The position numbers and the translations under genes were made by a program. A model generated the notes under the pieces. The model worked only from the letters and a program-made list of their open reading frames with translations. It was not told the origin of the DNA and ran no database searches. From sequence record MW749003.1: DNA of 64,000 bases; one strand, given 5' to 3'. Below, in pieces: positions 1 to 46,062 of this stretch. How positions within the stretch are numbered: position 1 is the stretch's first letter; each line of letters opens with the position of its first letter.

Positions 1-246
1 TCCAAACTCTTCTGCTAAATTACTAGTAAAACCAATAAGTATCTCAATATCCCTTTTTAATTCTCGAATATCAATATAATATGAATTATTTTTTTCTTGA
101 TCCCCCAATTGATAATTACTACCTTTATGTCTCAATGTCCTATTAGTATCATCAATAACAATGGGTCTCAATTTACCAAATATATTTGCATCATTTAACT
201 CCTTTACTAAATTCTCTAATGCTTCTAATGTAATATCTTTTCCCAA
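1..246 (-). CDS. Hypothetical protein, runs off window start
   Basis: GGAGG RBS then TTG at 246; frame open to base 1 (MGKDITLEALENLVKELND...); early-type motif at 285-300 upstream. Confidence 0.6.
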   Translation of the reverse strand, partial: MGKDITLEALENLVKELNDANIFGKLRPIVIDDTNRTLRHKGSNYQLGDQEKNNSYYIDIRELKRDIEILIGFTSNLAEEFG

Positions 247-284
247 GTGAAAAACCTCCATAATAATAAAACTTTATCATTAAT

Positions 285-300
285 ATAATATATATTTAAA
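285..300 (-). promoter_or_regulatory. Putative phage early promoter (TATATTAT class)
   Basis: Minus strand TTTAAATATATATTAT upstream of an operon start; same motif found at 8 other positions. Confidence 0.6.
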
Positions 301-322
301 ATTTATATTTACATTTACTATG

Positions 323-334
323 AACAATAGAATA
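323..334 (+). promoter_or_regulatory. Putative phage late promoter AACA-N6-TA
   Basis: AACA ATAGAA TA 32 nt before the RNAP subunit gene; matches the AR9 late consensus AACA-N6-T(A/G) as I recall it. Confidence 0.6.
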
Positions 335-365
335 GAGACATATTGAGATATGGAGGTTGAATTAA

Positions 366-1571
366 TTGGAAAAAGTACAAAAACCAATATCTATTTCAGA
401 TAAAGATAAAGACTTTTTATTTTCTCTTTCTGAGGAAGATATTACATTAGAAATGCTAGAAAAACTTTTCGCTAATAAAAAGAATACAAAAGCTATGTTC
501 AAGCCAAATGATATATTTGTATTACCAAAGGGTAGATTATACAATGATAAGAGTATGACAACAACTGTTGGAAGATATATCTTTAATTTATTCATGTTAT
601 CTCCTAAAATTATTCAATTAGTAGGATATCAAAATATTTCATTTGATGATGGTAATATTGGTGGATTGGAAAATACTCTTTCTGAATATTTGATTGAAGA
701 TAAAATTACAGTGCAAGAATTTGCAGATTATATTGACAAATTACAATGGCTTGGATTTATTACTGCAAAATTCTTAAATGCGTCACTAACTTATGATCTA
801 TTAGAGATACCTAAAGAAACGGATGCTTTGAAAAAGAAATTAATTCAAGAGCATAAAAAAGCATTGGAATCTGGTGATTTAATTGCTATTAATAAAATTG
901 AAAAACAGTTAGTAGCTGATGCAAAAGGAAGAGTATCTGATATTCCTGACTATCAAATTTATGCTAGTGGTGCTCGTGGAAGTTTTGGTAACAACTATAA
1001 GAATACTACATTACTTCGTGGAGCTATTAAAAATTTAGCAAATCCTGATCAAGTTCATATTTCAGATGCGTCATTAATGGAAGGAATACCACCAGAAGAA
1101 ATTCAATACTATTCAGATATTATCACCCAAGCATCATACAGTCGTGCTGTTGGTACTAGGGAAGGTGGATATGAATCCAAGAAGCTTAGTGCTGCTTTCC
1201 AAAACATTGTTTTAGATGATGAAGGTTCTGATTGTCATACTAAAAAGACTGTAACAGTTGAACTTAATAAGGGTAATGCAAATATGTTTATGTATAGATA
1301 TATTGTAGAAAATAATAAACTAGTATTATTAACTTCGGATAATATCAATAATTATATTGGTAAAATAGTTAAAGTCAGAAGTCCTCTATACTGCTTAAGT
1401 AAACAATACTGTAGTAAATGTGCTGGCGAACTCTACTATCGTTTAGGTATTAGGAACGTTGGAATTATTTCCAACCGTATTGGGACTTCTTTACTTAATT
1501 CTTCATTAAAGGCGTTTCATGACATGACTTTAAAAGTTGTAAATCTTGATATAGACAAATATATTGAGTGA
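366..1571 (+). CDS. rpoC: Phage multisubunit RNA polymerase beta'-like subunit, C-terminal part (probably virion RNAP)
   Basis: SGARGS, bridge-helix-like SRAVGTREGGYESKKL, DCHT, VRSPLYC..CSKCAG Zn site, trigger-loop-like IGTSLLNSSLKAFH; TTG start with GGAGG; virion assignment inferred from the late-type promoter. Confidence 0.92.
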   Translation: MEKVQKPISISDKDKDFLFSLSEEDITLEMLEKLFANKKNTKAMFKPNDIFVLPKGRLYNDKSMTTTVGRYIFNLFMLSPKIIQLVGYQNISFDDGNIGGLENTLSEYLIEDKITVQEFADYIDKLQWLGFITAKFLNASLTYDLLEIPKETDALKKKLIQEHKKALESGDLIAINKIEKQLVADAKGRVSDIPDYQIYASGARGSFGNNYKNTTLLRGAIKNLANPDQVHISDASLMEGIPPEEIQYYSDIITQASYSRAVGTREGGYESKKLSAAFQNIVLDDEGSDCHTKKTVTVELNKGNANMFMYRYIVENNKLVLLTSDNINNYIGKIVKVRSPLYCLSKQYCSKCAGELYYRLGIRNVGIISNRIGTSLLNSSLKAFHDMTLKVVNLDIDKYIE

Positions 1572-1599
1572 TTTTTAGAAATAAATTAAAAAAATACAC

Positions 1600-1639
1600 A
1601 GGTTCCTAACATTAGATTATTAACTAATGTTAGGAGCTT
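1600..1639 (+). promoter_or_regulatory. RBS-sequestering hairpin containing a late promoter
   Basis: TCCTAACATTAG (1604-1615) pairs perfectly with CTAATGTTAGGA (1624-1635), covering the AGGAG RBS; AACA-TTAGAT-TA at 1608-1619. Confidence 0.75.
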
Positions 1640-1643
1640 ATTA

Positions 1644-3416
1644 ATGCCAAGAAAAAATAAATATATTCCCAAATCCAATGATAAGATTAATAAATACAAT
1701 TACAATGACTTATTAAAATTAGAAACTGATGGAAAATATGAATTTCTTGAAAATTATATTAAATCAACAACACCAATAGAATGTAAACATTTAGATTGTG
1801 GAAATATCTGGAGAGTAGCACCTTATGAAATAATTAAAAGAGGATCAAGATGTCCTTTATGCGCTAATAAAATTAGGGCAGAAAAAGAGAAGTCAAATAT
1901 TGACGAATTGAATAATTTGCTTTTTGAATCATATGGTTATTATCCATATAATTTTATAGGAGAATATATTAACCATTCAACACCTATAAGAGTAAAATGT
2001 AATATATGTAATAATGAAAGCAATATCACACCTGGAAATATAAAAAATAATATTAGATTAAAAAGAAAACCATTATGTAAACAGTGTAATATTAATAGAA
2101 TGAAAGATAATAAAGCTAGTAATGAAGAATATGAAATAAAATTATTGAAATTATTTAATAAAAAGGAATATGAGATATTAGAAGATTATAAAGGGGTAAA
2201 AGAATCAATAAAGCATAAATGTATTGATTGTGATTTAGAATTTAATGTTAAACCACAAAATATTATTTATGCTAAAACAAAACACAATAGAAAATATTGC
2301 CCTAGATGCAATAATATGGAAAGAGATATTAGAAGTTATGAAGAAAGATTAAAAGATTCTAATCCAAATATTATAGCATTAGAAGAGTTTAAAGGTAGAC
2401 GTACCCCAATTATGCATAAATGTTTAAAATGTAAAAATCAATGGTTAAGCGCACCTAATAATAGACTCAATGGAGAAGGATGCCCAAAATGTTCTAATAT
2501 ATTCACACAATCCAAAGGAGAAAAAGAAATTATAGATTTTATTACAGAGAATTATAAAGGTGAAATAATTCTTAGAAATAGATCAATATTAAATGGCAAA
2601 GAGTTAGATATTTATTTACCAGAATTGAAAATAGCCATTGAATATGATGGTTTATATTGGCACAATGAAAAACATAAAGGAAAGAATTATCATATCGATA
2701 AGACTAGAAAATGCAAAGAACATGGAGTAAGACTTATTCATGTATTTGAAGATGAATGGGTTAACAAAAATGAGTTAGTTAAATTCAAACTTCTTCATAT
2801 TCTTGGAATAAATAATCAAGAAAAAATATATGCAAGAAAATGTTATATTGAGGAAATTGATAGTTCTCTTAAAAATGAATTCTTAGAACGGAATCATATC
2901 CAAGGAAAAGATAATGCTAGTATTAAATTAGGATTATGGCTTCCAAAAGAAGATGGTGATGAATTAATTGCTATTATGACATTTGTTAAAAGAAGATTAG
3001 CACTAGGTTCAAAACATAAAGGAGAATTTGATTATGAACTTAGTAGATTTGCAACTGATAGGGACTATCGTGCTATAGGTGCATTTGGAAAGTTATTTAA
3101 ATATTTTATTGAAAATTATGAACATGATAGTATTATAACATATGCTGATATTAGATGGTCTGAAGGAAATGTATACATCAAAAATAATTTTGAATATACA
3201 CATGATAGTAGACCAAATTACTGGTATGTGGATAGAAATGATGGTACTAAACGAATTCATAGATTTAATTTTAGAAAACAAGAACTCAAAAATAAATTTC
3301 CTGAGATATATGATAGCGGTTTAACGGAGTTTGAAATAATGGATAATACAAATTTTTACAGAATATGGGATTGTGGTAATATGGTATTTAAATATGAAAA
3401 AAAAAATAAAGGTTGA
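1644..3416 (+). CDS. Free-standing homing-endonuclease-like protein (Hef-like): CxxC Zn-ribbon repeats + Vsr/EDxHD nuclease + C-terminal GNAT/Mom-like domain
   Basis: Repeated C-x-x-C motifs; LDIYLPELKIAIEYDGLYWH; C-terminal YELSRFA and IITYADIRWSEGNVYIKNNFEY. Confidence 0.8.
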   Translation: MPRKNKYIPKSNDKINKYNYNDLLKLETDGKYEFLENYIKSTTPIECKHLDCGNIWRVAPYEIIKRGSRCPLCANKIRAEKEKSNIDELNNLLFESYGYYPYNFIGEYINHSTPIRVKCNICNNESNITPGNIKNNIRLKRKPLCKQCNINRMKDNKASNEEYEIKLLKLFNKKEYEILEDYKGVKESIKHKCIDCDLEFNVKPQNIIYAKTKHNRKYCPRCNNMERDIRSYEERLKDSNPNIIALEEFKGRRTPIMHKCLKCKNQWLSAPNNRLNGEGCPKCSNIFTQSKGEKEIIDFITENYKGEIILRNRSILNGKELDIYLPELKIAIEYDGLYWHNEKHKGKNYHIDKTRKCKEHGVRLIHVFEDEWVNKNELVKFKLLHILGINNQEKIYARKCYIEEIDSSLKNEFLERNHIQGKDNASIKLGLWLPKEDGDELIAIMTFVKRRLALGSKHKGEFDYELSRFATDRDYRAIGAFGKLFKYFIENYEHDSIITYADIRWSEGNVYIKNNFEYTHDSRPNYWYVDRNDGTKRIHRFNFRKQELKNKFPEIYDSGLTEFEIMDNTNFYRIWDCGNMVFKYEKKNKG

Positions 3417-3441
3417 TTAATTTCAACCTTTATTTTTTTTT
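3398..3441. terminator. Bidirectional intrinsic terminator
   Basis: A-tract-TAAAGGTTGA / loop TTAATT / TCAACCTTTA-T-tract between convergent genes. Confidence 0.85.
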
Positions 3442-3694
3442 AGTCATACAATCCCTCATTAACAATCTCTAACATTTCATATTTTGTAAGTGGTCTTCCT
3501 AATCCATTAATATTAGGTATCTTGTAATTCTTTTCCCAACCCTTAAATCTAGCTCTTATTCTAGCAATGAATTGTATTTTCTTTTTAGTCTTTTCTGAAC
3601 CATCTTTAATCATCAATTCAGCAATCATGAAATCCATATCAATAATAGATTTTGCACGCAACAATTTTAATATGTCTAATGTCTTAGTTGTCAT
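3440..3694 (-). CDS. Hypothetical protein
   Basis: 84-aa ORF with AGGAG RBS in a tightly packed minus-strand operon. Confidence 0.65.
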   Translation of the reverse strand: MTTKTLDILKLLRAKSIIDMDFMIAELMIKDGSEKTKKKIQFIARIRARFKGWEKNYKIPNINGLGRPLTKYEMLEIVNEGLYD

Positions 3695-3706
3695 AACTTC
3701 TCCTAA

Positions 3707-4042
3707 TTAATTTAAGAATTTTATTTCTCTAATATAATCTTCCTCATCATAAGATACATTAATTTTGTCGCCCTTCTTGAGTGATTTAAAAACCTCTTCA
3801 CTTCCTGCATATAATTCTCTATTATTTCCTGAATCAGATAAAATAATCTTAAATGTATCTCTTGAATTTTTTCCTTTTCTTTCTATTTTTACCTTATCAA
3901 TTATTGTTGAATTATCTATAGTTGAATATTCTTTATATGTGTTAGTTGATGGTTTTTTATTATCTATAGTAGTATTGGTGCTTACTTGATTGCATCCTAC
4001 TAATAAGGCTGATAATAATCCTACAATAACTAATTTTTTCAA
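3707..4042 (-). CDS. Putative lipoprotein
   Basis: MKK + hydrophobic stretch + lipobox LLVGC. Confidence 0.7.
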   Translation of the reverse strand: MKKLVIVGLLSALLVGCNQVSTNTTIDNKKPSTNTYKEYSTIDNSTIIDKVKIERKGKNSRDTFKIILSDSGNNRELYAGSEEVFKSLKKGDKINVSYDEEDYIREIKFLN

Positions 4043-4072
4043 AAGAATTACCTCACAATCATCAAGTATCTC

Positions 4073-4255
4073 TTATTTATTTTCTGACTTACTTAACTCA
4101 TACATCTCATCAAGTAAGTTCATAGAATAATCAAACATTTCACTATATATACTATAGTTTATTTCCCCTGTTGAGTTTAAACCATTTAGAAAATCAGCCA
4201 TTTCAGATTTTAGTTTTTCTTTTTTTGTTGCATTAGGTGATATCCCCCACGCCAT
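4073..4255 (-). CDS. Hypothetical protein
   Basis: 60-aa ORF, GAGGTG RBS, operon packing. Confidence 0.6.
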   Translation of the reverse strand: MAWGISPNATKKEKLKSEMADFLNGLNSTGEINYSIYSEMFDYSMNLLDEMYELSKSENK

Positions 4256-4267
4256 TTATTTCACCTC

Positions 4268-4591
4268 TTAAATTTTATTTGGATTCCATCTTAAATAATT
4301 ATCTTCTATAACTTCAGCTCTACTTTTTTCGTAGCTTCTTATTAATTCTGTCACTGCATGAATCAAATGATTATTGTCTGTTAAACAATAATCTCCTATT
4401 TCATAGTATTTATTTGTCTCTTTACTTACTAAAACCTTATATTTTCTAAATATCTTACCTTCTACTTTTTTGTATAAAGTGATCCTCCATTTAAATTGAT
4501 CTCCTAATGTTTTCCTAACTACGTTAACATAATAAGTACCTTTATCTGTTTTAATTTCCTTTAAATCCTTTTTATTAATCAATTTTACCAT
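4268..4591 (-). CDS. Hypothetical protein (probable paralog of 4575..4916)
   Basis: KWRITLYK motif and C-terminal YLRWN resemble the neighbour. Confidence 0.6.
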   Translation of the reverse strand: MVKLINKKDLKEIKTDKGTYYVNVVRKTLGDQFKWRITLYKKVEGKIFRKYKVLVSKETNKYYEIGDYCLTDNNHLIHAVTELIRSYEKSRAEVIEDNYLRWNPNKI

Positions 4592-4916
4592 CCCACTTAT
4601 TGTAATTTTCTTTTATCTTTTTAACTTTGGTACTACTTTTTTCCTTTTTGAATTCTATAGATTCAATATGTTCAATTTCATCTTTTATAAATTCAATAAG
4701 CATGTTGTCTGGCTCTAAACTTGGTGTGAACCAATCTGTTTCAACTTCTCTAATATGCTTAAGATTGTATCCAAACCACCATTTTCTTTTATTTGCAGTA
4801 TATAAATTGACTAACCATTTATGCTGAAGTTCATTAAATGGAGGAGAATATCTTGATGTTTTTGTTACTATAACACCATATTTTCTTAGTTTTGATTCAA
4901 CTATTTTAATATCCAT
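4575..4916 (-). CDS. Hypothetical protein
   Basis: 113-aa ORF, AAGGAG RBS. Confidence 0.65.
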   Translation of the reverse strand: MDIKIVESKLRKYGVIVTKTSRYSPPFNELQHKWLVNLYTANKRKWWFGYNLKHIREVETDWFTPSLEPDNMLIEFIKDEIEHIESIEFKKEKSSTKVKKIKENYNKWDGKID

Positions 4917-4931
4917 TTTTAATCTCCTTTA

Positions 4932-4968
4932 AAAATATAAAGGATAATTAAATTATCCTTTATATTTT
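4932..4968 (-). terminator. Intrinsic terminator after RNAP beta' N gene
   Basis: AAAATATAAAGGATAATT / AATTATCCTTTATATTTT inverted repeat just past the exon-2 stop. Confidence 0.7.
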
Positions 4969-4975
4969 CTTCTCT

Positions 4976-6592
4976 TTAGTTATTTAGAATAAAGATTCCC
5001 AAAATCTGATCTTTCTGTAGATCAAAATCTCCATTAAACCGCCCGTTATTTCTGTCTACTAAGAAATTCTGTGGTGATAATAATGAGAAATGTTCTTTCA
5101 TCTTATTATCAAATACTGGAATGATATTCAGTACGTCCATTCAGTTTATATAAGAGCGCAACCTCTCATACCATTGAGCTAACATTTCTGTTAGAATCAG
5201 ACTATATCTTAACTATTAATTCTATTACCAAATTAATAGTTCCTCCCTTTTCCATTTAAAGCTTTCGCTACCTCATTAGCTTAGGCTGTACTCTACTCAC
5301 TTCCAGATACCGTATTTCTCGAATATCCGTGTTTTCGATAGTCGTTGAACCTTACTATACATTGCTCCACTTAAATGTATTTAAAACCTGTATAGTCTTG
5401 GCTGCTGGTTGGCATATCTTAAATGACTTAGCTTCCCAGACAATTAAAGAGGTTTAAAGACGGCAATCGCCTTACCGTCATAGTCACCCGATAATGCAGA
5501 TAATAAGTTATTGCTGATCCCAAGTGTTAAGTCTTTATAATCTTTTTTAATAAGACCAATTTTTAGGTATAAAATACTACCAATACTAATAGTAGGGTTA
5601 CGGTTAAGTAAAAATGTACAACCGCCTTTAGTTTTTGTAATTAGTTCTTCCATATAGTTATATAACTCTTGATTAAATCCTAGTATGCCTTTTTCCCAAA
5701 ATTTTAGTGCTTCATTATAATTTATACCTTTTACTTTACTGATAAGATTGATAAGCTGAAACTTATAAAGTTCTGCAAATGTTTTATAAGGCATAGCAAC
5801 TTCATCAATAGGATGACCAATTAATGGTGTAATAACATTTCTAGCACTAAAGTTGATTCTAGAACCCATAATATTCTTTCTTAGAAATCCTTTTTTACCT
5901 CGAAGGTATTCACTAATAATTCTTGTTAGGATATTATTGGCATAGAATTGCATATTATAAAGTAATGGTAATAATAGTAAATCAATGCTGTCATCAGATA
6001 CTACACCCTCATTAATCTGGTTTATGTACTCAATAACAAAGTTGTAGTAATTATTAATCTCATCAAATGCTAATACTTTTCCTTTACTCCCTGTTAATAA
6101 TGTGGCTGGTCTAAGTTTGTGTGAAAATACTGGTAGTTTATTAATAAAAATCTTATCATGATTTTCAATTAAGAAATCATATTCTTTTTGATATTTCTTT
6201 TTATCAGTGTATTTTTCAAGGAGATCATCAAAATTATCCTTAAACTTTACTAACCCGATATAATCATCTTCCCCAATTTCTTCTGTTAGATCAATATTCT
6301 CACCGTTTTGATCAATAGACTGTTGGTAGTTAATAATTTTATTAATACTTGGAATACATTTTTTGATGATAGTAAATAAGATTGGGTTGATAATATAATA
6401 AGGTTCAATATTAATCCATCCAATAGTATCTATATCCTTATCATCATCGTCTTCATTATAACTACCAAATATCCTTTCTGAGTAAATACCGTCATCAGAG
6501 AATTCATGATTTTCAATTGGATTAGCTCTTGTAATTAAATTCTCTTCATTGTAAATCTCATTAAAATCGATTAAGGATAGTTTCTTCCCCAT
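4976..6592 (-). CDS. rpoC: Phage RNA polymerase beta'-like subunit, N-terminal part with catalytic DxDGD (probably non-virion RNAP); spliced join(6592..5474, 5137..4976), 426 aa
   Basis: SERIFG, LPV..LRP, GKKGFLRKNIMGSRINFSAR, NRNPT; exon 1 ends SGDYDG and exon 2 (53 aa, absent from the ORF track) reads DVLNIIPVFD...QKDQILGIFILNN, completing DYDGD. Confidence 0.93.
5138..5473 (-). mobile_element. Group I intron (ORF-less, 336 nt) in RNAP beta' N gene
   Basis: P1 GACGGU|..GCCGUC with U-G at the splice site; core elements CAGCAGCCAAG, GGTTCAACGACTA, AAGATATAGTC; terminal G at 5138; removal restores frame. Confidence 0.92.
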
Positions 6593-33373: not shown

Positions 33374-36300
33374 ATGTATATCAAGAAGAAAAATGGTAAA
33401 AAGAAAGATATAGAAGTTGTTGAACTTCCTATTAATATAGAGATGTTTGATTCTATTATTCAATATACATTGTCTGATAATCCATTAATTACTAAGAAAT
33501 CTCTTATCAATTTAAGAAAATTAATTAATTTTATTGATATCAGATCCTATAGTGAAGATTTTTCAAGAATGTTAAGAATAGAATTACTTAAGAAGATTTT
33601 AGAAGGGGAATTGGATCAAAATATTTATAGAGATGCACTTCTTAAAGAATATTGCATAAAAGAATTACCTCATTACTCAAAGGATTTACTTGAATTATTT
33701 GAGTCTGGTTATTTTGATGAACCTCTATCTAATGATGATATTACGTTTATTAATAAATTTGTAGAAGAAAATTTAACGTATATCCATCTAAGAAGACATT
33801 CACCTGACTTAGAAATGGCTTTACAGCAATTAAGAGCTAGTGATTCTAGTAATCTTCGGTCAATTAATAATACATTAGAGAGAATTGTTGGGGAATTAAA
33901 TAAAGATATTAAATCTGCCAAGGCTGTTAATCAATATGCCGCAATGGATTTTAATATTAACGGAAATACTGCTGATTCAGTAGTAAGGGCAACTATTGAG
34001 GAATATAAGAAACCAAATAACCATTTAAAATTAGGTATTAAAAATCTTAATAAGATGCTTGATGGTGGAGTTGAGAATGGTCGAGTTTATTTAATCTTTG
34101 GTCTGCCTAAAGGGTTGATTTGAGCCCCTTCATACAGTAATGTATGTCGAAAACCTCTTTAACTGCTGGAAGTTCCAATATGTTAATTGGATAATCAGCA
34201 TCCAAGACTCTTAATGAGTAAGGTTCAACGACTATCCGAAAGCAATCTTAGGATTGTGAGTAGCCTTGAAATAGGCAATAGGAGTACGGCTCAAGTGATT
34301 GGAGTGGGTGAGAATCCCTTAAATGGAAATGGGAGGTATCCTATTAATTAATAGGATAATGATATAGTCTCGACTTCTACGTATATATAAAGGTAGAGCA
34401 GTTCATAAGAGAACGCAGTAGATGTAGCGAATCTACTGGAAGACACCGTTAAATCTGGAACTTTATTAAATATCGCAATATGGATTTGTAAATATAATAG
34501 AGAGATTGTTACAAAAGATAAAACTAAAAAACCATGTGTTTTATATGTAACACAAGAAAATAGTATTCGAGAAACTCTTCAAAGAATATTTGTTCATAGC
34601 ACTGGTAGTAATATTGAGAACTATACTGAAGAAGAGGCTCTGCGAATTATTAGAGAAGAAGTGATCGGTATAGACGAAAATGGTGAAGCACCTATTGATC
34701 TCTTTATTAAATACCGTCCTAATAAATCAATTAGTACTTCTGATTTAGATACTATGTGTGATGATTTAGAATTAGAAGGATATGAAGTAGTTTGTCTTAT
34801 TCAAGATTATACTAAGCGTATTAGATCATCAAGCTATAATCCTTCTGATCTTCGACTTGAACTCGGTTCGGTGGTTGATGACTTCACGGTTGCTTAGTAG
34901 TATTATCAACATTGTTTTCTCATTAAATAACGATAGGAGTGTTATAAAATGGGAAAAACAACAAAGAAAACTATTGATAGTGTAAAAGAGGAAATAAAAC
35001 TACTCTCTAATGGGGAATATGAGGTAGTATCTGATGTTTATAAAAATAATGAAGGTGAGTTAATTATTCGCCATCATATGAAAGATGGGACTTTTCATGA
35101 CTACAAAAGTAGTAGAAAAGCATTTGTCAATAGAAATAATAGATGTCCACAATGTAATACAAAAAGATTGAAAACAATTAATCCTAATTTTAAATCCTTT
35201 GATTTAATAAAAGAAGAATTTAAAAATATAGTAGGAAATGAATATGAAATCTTAACAGAATCATCTGAATATAGGAATAATAAACAAAAATTATTAATTC
35301 GTCATTTTATAAATGATTCATTTCATGATTTTGAAATGCGTTATAATGATATTACAAATGGTCATCGTTGTTCAATTTGTAGTGGTCGTAAGAAAAAGAC
35401 ACAAAAAGAATTTGAACAAGAAGTGGAAAAGTTAGGCAAAGGTGAATATAAAGTTAATGGAAAGTATAAAAATAATCGCACTCATATTGAATTAATCCAT
35501 CTAAAATGTAATAAAATATGGAATGTAAGACCAGATGACTTCACAAATGGTTTTAATAGATGTCCATATTGTACTGGAAGTAATGGTGAGCAGATTATTA
35601 TGAGATATTTAGAAGAGAAAAATTATAATTATACTTTTCAATATATTTATCAAGATTGTAAAAATATTAGACCATTGCCATTTGACTTTAAAGTTAATCT
35701 AAATAATGTACCAATAATTATTGAATATGATGGAAAAATGCATTTTGAACCTATTTATGGTGAAGAAAAATTTATTCAACAATTAAAAAATGATGAAATA
35801 AAAAATAATTATTGTAAAGATAATAATATTCCCCTTTTAAGAATTAAATACACTGATATCAAGAATATAGACACTTTAATAGAAAACTTTGTTGATAAAC
35901 TCAATAGCTGTGATTAAACTCCTTTAACTGCTGGGAACTCCTAAAGTCTTTAGTACCAAAGTGTAAAAATCTAAAGAATGTTACAATGGACAATCAGCAA
36001 CCAAGACTTTGTAAGGTTCAACGACTATCGAAACCACTTTATCAGATCGTTGTGAAACGCTAGATAGAGATAAGGGAGTAGAGTACAGCCAAGCGGTAAG
36101 GTTTGATCGTAATAAGATCTGTAATTCCTTTTAAATGGAAATGGGGAGCGCCATATTTAGGCGAAGATATAGTCTCATCTCTATGGAAACATAGAGCAGT
36201 TCATAAGAGAACGCATTAGATGTAGCGAATCTAATGGAAGATAATGTATAGCAAAAACTAGAAATATTCCTGTTATTTCAGCAGGACAGTTGAATAGGGA

Positions 36301-43518: not shown

Positions 43519-46062
43519 TTGGCTGATATAACTCTTACGGATAAACAGAATAAAGCTAAAAATGAATGTCTTGATTGGTACTTTGGTAGGGAGACCAACG
43601 GTAAAGATCCAGACAGAATATTCACTATTGCAGGATTAGCAGGTACAGGAAAATCAACATTAGTTAAATTTATAATTGAAGAGATAGGTTTAGATGTTGA
43701 TGAGGTAGTATTTATTGCATATACAGGAATGGCGGCAAATGTTCTAACACGAAAGGGAAATGTAGGCGCTAGCACTATTCACAAATTTATCTATCATGCT
43801 ATTCCTGTTAAAGATCCAGAAACAGGTGAAATCCTTAAATTTATATTCAGGTTAAAAGAAAAAGATGAAATGGATGATAAAATTAAATTAGTTGTAATTG
43901 ATGAAGTATCAATGGTAGATACAGGAATGCTTAACGAAGTACACTCTTTTGGTATTAGGACAATGGCTCTTGGAGACCCAGGTTATAAATTGGCTTGGGT
44001 ATAAAACTTCTTTAATTGCTGGAATACCCTTAGAGCTTTTTAAACTACAGCATAATTGGAAACAATAAGTGCGATAGTTTTAAAAATTAAAAAGATTGGG
44101 CGATCAGCAGCTAATCTCCTTAACATTAGAAAAGGCGTATCTCCTAACTATTTAAATATATATTATAATGTTAGGAGAGGAGAATTAAAATGCCAAAAAA
44201 GAAAACATTAGAAGAATTTAAGATTGATGTTCTTAATAAATTAGGAAAAGAATATGAAGTTACTGGTGATTATGTTAATAATAAAACAAAAATAGAGATG
44301 AAACATTCTTGTGGTTATATCTATTATTCACGCCCTCATGATATCTTGGTCAAAGGTAATGGTTGTCCTAAATGCAATGGCGGCGTTCCAAAAAATCTAG
44401 ATGATTTATTAAAAGAGATCCCATTAGGCTATAAATATTTATCTGGATTTGAAGGATATAAGAAAAAAGCTAGATTTATTCATACTGAATGTAATTTTAA
44501 GTTTGAAATGGAACCATCTAAACTAATTTTAGGAAGAAGATGTCCTAGATGTGGTGGAACCAAGAAAAAAACACATGATGAATTTATAAAAGAAATAGAA
44601 AAGTTTAATGATTCTCATGAGTATGAATTTACTGAAAGTTATATTAATGATAGAACTAAAATAGGTATAATTCATAAAGAATGTAATCATGAATATAAAG
44701 TAACTCCATCTCACTTTTTAAGAGGAAGAAGATGTCCAATGTGTTCTAAAATAAATTCTAAAGGCATTAGAATAATTAAAGAATTTTTAAATTCTAATAG
44801 CATAACTTATATTCAGGAATATCAAAATCCTTTATTTATTGCTAAGAACAATCGTCCTTATAGATTTGATTTATATTTACCTGAATATGAATTGATAATA
44901 GAATTTGATGGAGAACAACATTTTTCTAGTAAAAATTTTGGGTATGAGGCATTTATACAATGCAAGAAAAATGACATAATAAAAAACCAGTGGATCAAAA
45001 ACAATGATTTATCTTTATTAAGAATTAATTTTAATCATCAATCTAATTTATCAATTATTCTAAAATCTCTTTTTCTAGATGAAGGAGAAAGTTCAGAGAC
45101 TATCGAAAAATATGGATTATATTATATTTCTCACGATTCTTATATAATGAATGAAGAGGAATATTACTCCATAATTGAGTAGAGTACTCTACAAGCGATT
45201 GGTAGGGGAAACGGGAAGCACAGAAGATATAGTCCGATCTTTATCGAAAGATAAAGCAGTTCTTAATGAACGGTATGAATTTAGCGAATTCATATGAACA
45301 TAATAGCAATTACCACCTGTAGGTAATAAAGGCAATACTCTATTACAAAATCCAGATGTTTTTCTTGATGAGATTATGAGACAAGCATTAGATAACCCAA
45401 TTATTTATTTATCAATGTTGGCAAGGGAGGGAAAATTTATATCATATGGAACTCATGGAGATAGGGTACAGGTAATTAGAAGGCATGAGTTATATAAAGA
45501 CATGTTTTTAGGTGCAGATCAAATAATTGCTGGTTATAATAAGACTGTACAAAGTATTAATGCTTATCATAGACGATTTATATTGGGAATAGAAAATCCA
45601 TTTCCTGTAGAGGGAGATAAGATTATTTGTGGAAAAAATCAATGGGAACACACTATTTATGAAGATAATTTAGAAGTTTCATTAGTAAATGGTCTTATAG
45701 GTAGAATAGAATCTATTGAAAATCAAAAAAGATCTGCTACATATAAGATAAGTTTTAGACCAGAATTCTTTAAAGAAGAAAAATTCCCTAAATTATATAT
45801 GAATAAAATTCCTTTTATGAATGAAAAGGTAAGGGACTCATTTGATGAAAAATCTCTTTATGTATTTAGAAAGAAAATTATTGAAACTTACGGTATTAGT
45901 GAGTTTAAATTTGGTTATGCTATTAGTTGTCATAAAAGCCAAGGTTCTGAATTTGATAATGTACTATTGTTTGAAGAAAAATTACCTAATAGAAAGTTTC
46001 ATAAAAATTGGCTATATACAGGAATTACTAGGGCAAAAGAAAAATTAATTTTAGTTAAATAG
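43519..46062 (+). CDS. RecD/Dda-like SF1B helicase, spliced join(43519..43983, 45307..46062), 406 aa
   Basis: GLAGTGKS, STIHKF, IDEVSM, spliced LGDPG-QLPPV, MRQA, YAISCHKSQGSEF, YTGITRAK. Confidence 0.9.
44151..44166 (+). promoter_or_regulatory. Early-type promoter internal to intron, upstream of endonuclease
   Basis: TTTAAATATATATTAT, identical to the copy at 285-300. Confidence 0.6.
44190..45182 (+). CDS. Intron-encoded homing endonuclease (Zn-ribbon repeats + Vsr/EDxHD-like domain)
   Basis: Three CPxC repeats; YRFDLYLPEYELIIEFDGEQH..NDIIKN..LLRI; C-terminus overlaps intron core. Confidence 0.85.
   Translation: MPKKKTLEEFKIDVLNKLGKEYEVTGDYVNNKTKIEMKHSCGYIYYSRPHDILVKGNGCPKCNGGVPKNLDDLLKEIPLGYKYLSGFEGYKKKARFIHTECNFKFEMEPSKLILGRRCPRCGGTKKKTHDEFIKEIEKFNDSHEYEFTESYINDRTKIGIIHKECNHEYKVTPSHFLRGRRCPMCSKINSKGIRIIKEFLNSNSITYIQEYQNPLFIAKNNRPYRFDLYLPEYELIIEFDGEQHFSSKNFGYEAFIQCKKNDIIKNQWIKNNDLSLLRINFNHQSNLSIILKSLFLDEGESSETIEKYGLYYISHDSYIMNEEEYYSIIE

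Follow-up and report, generated by a model that had tools for sequence, protein, structure and literature searches.

Background

Taylor et al. (2011) placed the Hef-type enzymes in the Vsr-like EDxHD family of homing endonucleases, the prototype of which, I-Bth0305I, is a homodimer and whose intron-encoded members cleave DNA without any Mom-like domain (PMC3239194); the hef of phage U5 has been reported to cleave nrdB (PMC2988022). Iyer, Anantharaman, Krishnan, Burroughs and Aravind (2021; Viruses 13:63, PMC7824862) described fusions of Mom with a restriction endonuclease (Mom-REase fusions) in jumbo phages and read them as restrict-and-protect proteins, in which the nuclease attacks and momylation protects. 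Here we analyze INTERNEXUS_147, an open reading frame (ORF) of 590 aa with an ATG start at positions 1644..3416 (+ strand) of a 64,000-nucleotide stretch of record MW749003.1 (hereafter the window). The window is 100% identical to Bacillus phage vB_BspM_Internexus, a Takahashivirus of the AR9/PBS1 group, i.e., jumbo phages in whose DNA uracil replaces thymine, and the record annotates the gene as “putative Hef-like homing endonuclease”.

The third relevant system is Mom of phage Mu, an adenine-N6 DNA-modifying GNAT whose donor is Gly-tRNA(Gly) and not an acyl-CoA (Silva et al. 2026; PMC13219725). Mu Mom binds tRNA as a co-substrate, forms a tight dimer via W48 and protects against many restriction enzymes; its helix-turn-helix (HTH)-like insertion (residues ~175-209) is essential, and mutagenesis has defined its functionally important residues, including the essential R111, S124, D149 and R151 (PMC13219725).

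Compared with these systems, INTERNEXUS_147 resembles I-Bth0305I in that a modular DNA-binding region at the N terminus precedes a Vsr-like catalytic domain. However, I-Bth0305I is intron-encoded, carries NUMOD/HTH modules and stops at the nuclease domain, while INTERNEXUS_147 is free-standing, carries zinc ribbons and continues into an additional 200-aa Mom-like domain. Unlike Mu Mom, which is stand-alone and accompanied by the regulator Com, this domain is fused to a nuclease. Both the architecture and the proposed logic of the Mom-REase fusions are the same as in INTERNEXUS_147, and all five copies that Iyer et al. counted in PA5oct were recovered with the INTERNEXUS_147 C-terminal domain (C-domain) as query. 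Iyer et al. treated the proteins as restriction-like defence, however, with the term homing endonuclease absent from their text; they assigned the fusions to “group 2” phages with no mention for PBS1/AR9, and they assumed an acyl-CoA donor (PMC7824862). Some GenBank records of Acinetobacter phages name homologues “nuclease/acetyltransferase”.

These comparisons indicate that the literatures on “Hef homing endonucleases” and on “momylating restriction-like enzymes” concern the same proteins. Both the fusion and its cut-and-protect reading are already known, as is the Hef-like annotation of INTERNEXUS_147; the observation is well supported, and the cut-and-protect interpretation, a prediction from sequence, matches the published one, at which Iyer et al. 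had arrived independently. What is added here is: i) the link between the Hef and Mom-REase literatures; ii) evidence of mobility at the INTERNEXUS_147 locus; iii) a comparison with the new Mom structure at the level of single residues; and iv) a negative result on an antidote-like asymmetry between the two domains.

A Mom-like GNAT fold in the C-terminal domain

The first-pass annotation, made from the letters of the window, had proposed that the last ~200 aa of the protein form a Mom-like GNAT domain. A GNAT fold is indeed predicted for this region (aa 395-590; 2826..3413, + strand; supported by AlphaFold2 (AF2), Foldseek, hhalign and residue conservation), with Mu Mom as the nearest solved structure by Foldseek. 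Single-sequence searches of Pfam, NCBIfam and PDB with the C-domain gave nothing useful, and a profile of its family (15,596 clusters at 50% identity and E<=1e-3) found among PDB sequences only marginal GNATs (2fia, E 0.22; 2bsw, E 0.24) and missed Mu Mom (8BV8). It took structure prediction and the comparison of profiles with profiles to reveal the relationship. An AF2 model built from 60 homologues (mean pLDDT 90.2, pTM 0.79) retrieved chains A and B of 8BV8 first in a Foldseek search of PDB (E 3.8e-7 and 4.2e-7, prob 1.00, TM 0.52-0.55), while generic GNATs followed at E ~2e-3, about four orders of magnitude behind; GNATs acting on tRNA, e.g., TacT, were among the weaker structural matches. 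Among the predicted viral structures of BFVD, the matches began with Hef-like proteins (E 1e-21) and passed gradually into Mom proteins that phages encode as stand-alone genes, such as that of Salmonella phage FSL SP-031 (E 1.3e-10, TM 0.63-0.66). Moreover, when 60 Hef C-domains were aligned with 42 Mom-family proteins by hhalign, the probability was 94% (E 1.4e-7), and the Pfam Mom model PF25680 was matched by 26 of 60 close homologues (best E 7.8e-9, vs 2.4e-75 for Mu Mom itself), with precomputed PF25680 matches in many homologues of the domain. Because four independent lines concur (AF2 against PDB, BFVD, hhalign and PF25680 in homologues), we regard a Mom-like GNAT fold in INTERNEXUS_147 as close to certain.

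At the sequence level the resemblance is more distant: identity between Mu Mom (PF25680, 8BV8) and the C-domain is only 14-17%. The strings on which the original proposal leaned (FLERNHIQG, YELSRFA, IITYADIRWSEGNVYIKNNFEY and the nuclease motif) are all present in the translation of 1644..3416. The Mom motifs that it cited do have counterparts in the C-domain, although their wording was approximate, the actual Mu Mom sequences being MELNRMW and SFADERCGRAGVVYQASNF. The C-domain appears to carry a helical basic insertion between its last core strands, at the position of the HTH-like insertion of Mom; in the model, helices occupy domain residues 161-187 there, with R540 and K545 invariant. The Foldseek alignment with 8BV8 spans 202-205 columns, while the hhalign alignment ends before the insertion (Mom ~175-209).

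Residues of the Mu Mom active site

Residue conservation was counted in 248 homologues retrieved with the C-domain. Five residues of the Mom active site are kept almost throughout: H58 corresponds to H418 (248/248), R111 to R468 (248/248), D149 to D502 (246/248), R151 to R504 (242/248) and Y159 to Y511 (248/248). In addition, the dimer residue W48 aligns with F413, a near-invariant aromatic position (244/248). On the other hand, the alignment around the essential S124 is unstable, the residue falling on Y475 in one hhalign run and on I478 in another, and neither column is a conserved serine. In the loop where S124 would be expected (aa 481-483; window 3085-3093), position 482 is Ser in 157 and Gly in 79 homologues, and Gly in INTERNEXUS_147. 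A glycine that Mom lacks, G479 of the beta4-alpha3 loop, is invariant in the family. Because of the unstable S124 alignment and of G479, we describe the C-domain family as a Mom-like sister group and not as a certified member of the Mom family.

In a second set of 120 relatives, retrieved with the nuclease domain, the Mom-type residue set is exact in 82 and present in 100 when shifts are allowed for; the D...R spacing drifts in ~30%. A subclade of ~10 proteins (loop SYVYKAW or similar) has the D149/R151 equivalents replaced and the nuclease intact.

The nuclease and the Mom-like domain as constant partners

The sets of 248 C-domain-seeded and 120 nuclease-seeded relatives are each biased towards the domain that seeded them. 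Nevertheless, the nuclease domain is found in 246 of the former and the C-domain in 119 of the latter. The nuclease and Mom-like pair is thus the constant, near-obligate core of the family.

A core nuclease residue is lost in 28 of the 246 C-domain-seeded relatives (11%), all 28 of which have perfect Mom-like motifs, and altered Mom motifs occur in only five members of that set. This apparent antidote-like asymmetry (28 broken nucleases vs five altered motifs) disappears once ascertainment through the C-domain is allowed for: in the reciprocal, nuclease-seeded set, 20 of 120 relatives (17%) combine an intact nuclease with either a deviating set of Mom-type residues or no Mom-like domain at all.

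The Mom-like domain is widespread, with 920 copies in 374 phage records by tblastn. AR9, PBS1 and Internexus have three copies each, PA5oct has five and Campylobacter phages reach 10-11; Goe21, a close relative of Internexus, is absent from the tblastn matches.

A Vsr-like nuclease behind a variable N-terminal module

An EYDGxxxH nuclease had been noticed upstream of the Mom-like domain, and this part of the protein (aa 283-386; 2490..2801, + strand) does carry the motif IEYDGLYWH in a domain that is Vsr-like by profile and structure, of the PD-(D/E)XK type and probably an EDxHD nuclease. With a profile of 44 homologous nuclease domains, the best match among PDB sequences (hmmsearch) was 3R3P, the catalytic domain of I-Bth0305I (E 1e-6). 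The AF2 model (pLDDT 95.6) also returned 3R3P as the top Foldseek match (E 1.2e-4, TM 0.67-0.69, root-mean-square deviation 3.2), followed by E. coli Vsr (1VSR, E 8.8e-3) and the DUF559 protein 3HRL; Pfam matches were weak (MTES_1575, PvuRts1I_N and Vsr). INTERNEXUS_147 keeps E320, D322, E333, H340, H350, D370 and E371. The full pattern is present in 178 of 246 relatives, and the 3R3P chain has N and A at two positions aligned to these nuclease residues. Position 335 was dropped from the core as variable (N 98, D 88, C 38), and the core was redefined as D322/E333/H340.

The Zn-ribbon repeats reported ahead of the nuclease resolve into four Cys4 units (C-x2/4-C...C-x2-C) at aa 1-285 (1644..2498, + strand), which match DUF4379 (treble-clef Zn finger) and CapR in Pfam, in three stretches each. 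The array is presumed to be a sequence-specific DNA-binding module. Among relatives the N-terminal modules differ, comprising zinc ribbons, DUF7487, NUMOD3 and HNH_repeat (“homing endonuclease associated repeat”), and NUMOD3 and HNH_repeat are modules of other homing endonucleases as well.

The same-locus orthologue in AR9, g265, is ~98% identical to INTERNEXUS_147 from aa 250 on and only ~30% identical in the zinc-ribbon array. At the DNA level, the 3' two-thirds are common to the Internexus and AR9/PBS1 alleles (93.7% identity), while their 5' regions and zinc-ribbon arrays are unrelated (window 1580-2293 vs 2575-3238 of the AR9 locus sequence). This N-terminal mismatch suggests a swapped DNA-binding module, which possibly gives the Internexus allele a different target.

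Mobility at the RNA polymerase beta locus

By profile search INTERNEXUS_147 belongs to phrog_559 (E 6.8e-145, aa 214-589) and phrog_3339, “homing endonuclease” (E 7.8e-105, aa 27-586), and its C-domain alone matches the two at 8.4e-67 and 5.4e-64, respectively. Like the Hef-like homing endonucleases with which it groups (phrog_559/phrog_3339; AR9 g265), the gene is free-standing, intergenic, located beside a conserved essential gene, multi-copy and patchily distributed. Nothing essential sets INTERNEXUS_147 apart from them; relative to the AR9/PBS1 allele it differs in the zinc-ribbon array and 5' region and lacks the early promoter annotated in AR9.

The cassette (1568..3397, unstranded) occupies a convergent intergenic region between the gene for the virion RNA polymerase (RNAP) beta subunit (C-terminal part) and INTERNEXUS_148. 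In Goe21 (OM728297.1), no gene is annotated at the homologous site. By blastn, window 1-1567 corresponds to 1001-2562 of the Goe21 locus sequence and window 3398-5137 to 2570-4313 of it; together with the junction alignments, this leaves 1568-3397 opposite 7 bp in Goe21, which lie within a different terminator hairpin between the same two convergent genes.

Sequence differences pile up next to this insertion. Internexus and Goe21 differ at 33 positions across 1206 nt of the RNAP beta gene; 20 of these are concentrated in the final 206 nt (binomial p 2.6e-8), and only three amino acids are altered. For AR9 and Goe21, the final 606 nt hold 72 of the 74 differences (p 2e-19), and six amino acids are altered. 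Moreover, of the positions common to all genomes that carry the homing endonuclease gene and different in Goe21, 7 of 8 lie at 1358-1568. The clustered synonymous tracts beside the cassette are the expected trace of co-conversion during homing, and the tract at 1366..1567 (+ strand; divergent, mostly synonymous, at the 3' terminus of the gene for virion RNAP beta, delimited by clustering of differences vs Goe21) is a candidate region for the cleavage site. In the sense in which a homing endonuclease gene acts against competing genomes, INTERNEXUS_147 behaves as a weapon, in line with the first-pass annotation: the gene is absent at the Goe21 site and co-conversion-like tracts flank the cassette. 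There is very little doubt that INTERNEXUS_147 is a Hef-type mobile endonuclease gene.

Expression signals around the gene

A predicted 16-bp hairpin at 1600-1639 (+ strand; -21.4 kcal/mol, z -6.56, none of 200 shuffles as stable) buries the Shine-Dalgarno sequence AGGAG (1632-1636), which lies 7 nt before the ATG, and probably limits translation of INTERNEXUS_147. Translation of phage homing endonucleases is commonly restricted by RNA structure, and Mu mom is also controlled via an RNA hairpin. Directly upstream of the gene there is no AR9-type early promoter core, unlike in AR9 g265, and sigma-70-like sites are no commoner than in shuffles; expression would probably be by read-through, with translation throttled. 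Downstream, a terminator scan (one found vs 0.3 expected) placed a hairpin and T-run at 3398..3441 (unstranded), overlapping the last codons of the ORF. This terminator serves both convergent genes and, by alignment, its hairpin differs from that of the empty site in Goe21.

Intron-associated nucleases and other inserts

The Mom-like domain occurs once in the window and is missing from its two intron-associated nucleases, INTERNEXUS_183 and INTERNEXUS_193, as had been pointed out. INTERNEXUS_183 (34949..35917) combines zinc ribbon and EYDG-type nuclease and lies inside a DnaB-like helicase gene annotated in three pieces. INTERNEXUS_193 (44190..45182), with zinc ribbon and EFDG-type nuclease, accompanies ~1.3 kb of extra DNA that interrupts a RecD/Dda-like helicase gene, uninterrupted in Goe21, AR9 and PBS1; it is likely an intron-borne endonuclease unique to Internexus. 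The Moonbeam35 and Moonbeam37 intron endonucleases (264-307 aa; Moonbeam being the phage checked among the Bastillevirinae with intron-encoded phrog_559 members) also lack the C-domain. All five intron-encoded Vsr-like nucleases examined, i.e., I-Bth0305I, these two and the two of the window, are thus without a Mom-like domain, whereas the free-standing Hef types carry one.

A further insert, of 336 nt and absent from Goe21, lies at 5138-5473 in the gene for the non-virion RNAP beta' subunit (N-terminal part). In AR9 and PBS1, this insert includes an ORF for an HNH endonuclease (561 nt extra), while the Internexus insert has no ORF. AR9 and Goe21 also diverge densely (20-26 differences per 100 nt) in a second block, located 900-1400 nt rightward of the cassette (~window 4300-4800) and adjoining the RNAP beta' gene that bears the intron; this block may have arisen by co-conversion with the HNH/intron element. 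Goe21 seems free of these elements altogether, with no Mom-like domain by tblastn and with rpoC_2 and recD2 uninterrupted. Despite the three interrupted genes, an Rfam scan of the whole window at the gathering threshold returned no group I intron and no other family.

What the Mom-like domain may do

The best explanation of the whole, the chances of which we put at about even, is a free-standing, selfish Hef-type cassette with a putatively self-protecting Mom-like domain. The four N-terminal zinc ribbons would bind a specific DNA site, and the Vsr-like EDxHD nuclease would cut the allele without the cassette in a co-infecting relative. The cut would probably fall inside the final ~200 nt of the RNAP beta gene or close to them. 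Recombinational repair would then copy the cassette together with the flanking tract, of which the presence/absence polymorphism and the divergent tracts are observed. Translation would probably be throttled by the predicted hairpin that buries the ribosome-binding site. The Mom-like domain most likely still acts on nucleic acid; the preferred form of this step is that it would attach an acyl or aminoacyl moiety to a base of the carrier genome, within the recognition site or close to it, and so spare that genome.

These parts are not equally firm. Enzymatic activity of the Mom-like domain on nucleic acid is somewhat more likely than not. Self-protection by DNA modification is tentative, and on balance we lean somewhat against it. 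The most specific form, in which Hef-type enzymes would be single-chain “cut and momylate” elements containing a site-directed DNA acyl- or aminoacyl-transferase, possibly tRNA-dependent, is more doubtful still. Since Mu Mom uses Gly-tRNA(Gly), absence of CoA binding would refute none of these. In favour of self-protection, the counterparts of the Mom active-site residues H58, R111, D149, R151 and Y159 are kept. Furthermore, insertion of an intron destroys the endonuclease's own target and insertion of a free-standing gene beside it does not, so that a free-standing gene would need some other immunity; the contrast between intron-encoded and free-standing nucleases fits self-protection.

Several observations weigh against the self-protecting cassette: i) that contrast rests on a handful of cases; ii) INTERNEXUS_147 itself has no match to PF25680 at E<=10 as an isolated domain or at E<=1 at full length; iii) the invariant and essential S124 of Mom has no conserved serine counterpart among the 248 C-domain-seeded homologues, and Y59, which aligns with I419, is not conserved; iv) an antidote should outlive its nuclease, yet the reciprocal test (246 and 120 relatives) found no excess of forms that kept the protector and lost the nuclease, which counts against an obligatory antidote; v) Goe21 has no copy at all, so the Mom-like domain is dispensable for this type of phage; vi) other free-standing phage endonucleases reportedly manage without a modifying domain; and vii) Hef reportedly also cut the DNA of its own phage in vitro (Sandegren et al. 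2005).

Some of these observations would be expected if the Mom-like domain were a structural part, i.e., a DNA-clamping, base-flipping or dimerisation module whose Arg, Asp and Tyr contact DNA. A domain that is the constant partner of the nuclease while specificity modules vary, that has not conserved S124, that lets the D...R spacing drift in ~30% of nuclease-seeded relatives and that shows no antidote-like asymmetry would suit such a role. By dimerising, the domain could enable a pair of nickase-type Vsr domains to break both strands, and here the near-invariant aromatic F413, aligned with the W48 through which Mom dimerises (PMC13219725), and the homodimeric state of I-Bth0305I (PMC3239194) are in line. 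However, the invariant residues are those lining the Mom active site, which is unusual for a scaffold; the 11% of relatives that have lost nuclease residues keep a perfect Mom-like set, which suggests a value of its own; and intron-encoded family members cut without the domain (PMC3239194). We consider a structural role unlikely, though still to be taken seriously.

Much less room is left for a single-chain weapon resembling restriction-modification, with broad specificity, genome-wide momylation of the phage's own DNA and mobility as a secondary trait. Such a weapon is the published prediction for the jumbo-phage Mom-REase fusions, including the five copies of PA5oct (PMC7824862), and Mu Mom does protect against many restriction enzymes (PMC13219725). 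Yet the locus bears a site-specific homing signature (one intergenic site, presence/absence in near-identical genomes and co-conversion tracts), there are several paralogues per genome with different DNA-binding modules at different loci, the nuclease has as its nearest relative a homing endonuclease whose site is long and specific, and Goe21 thrives without a copy, all of which make this reading improbable. Equally improbable is acylation of a substrate other than DNA (tRNA, as by TacT, or a host or phage protein), with a benefit or addiction unrelated to target-site protection: TacT-type GNATs do occur lower down among the structural matches, tRNA is a co-substrate that Mom binds (PMC13219725) and the motif set is intact in nuclease-dead relatives. 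However, structure and profile both place the domain closest to DNA-modifying Moms rather than to TacT-type or protein acetyltransferases, and its near-obligate fusion with a DNA nuclease points to a role linked to DNA.

Implications

The role of the Mom-like domain matters for a very large family, with at least 15,596 clusters and with 920 copies in 374 phages, as does the question whether the 2026 finding of a charged tRNA as donor for Mom extends to Mom-nuclease fusions. AR9, PBS1 and Internexus, with three copies each, and Goe21, with none, provide a clean natural test system in a laboratory host. If the self-protecting form of the mechanism is true, cut-and-momylate enzymes would be the first homing endonucleases with built-in epigenetic self-immunity, and unrecognised site-specific adenine hypermodifications would be implied for hundreds of sequenced phages and for at least ~15,600 protein clusters.

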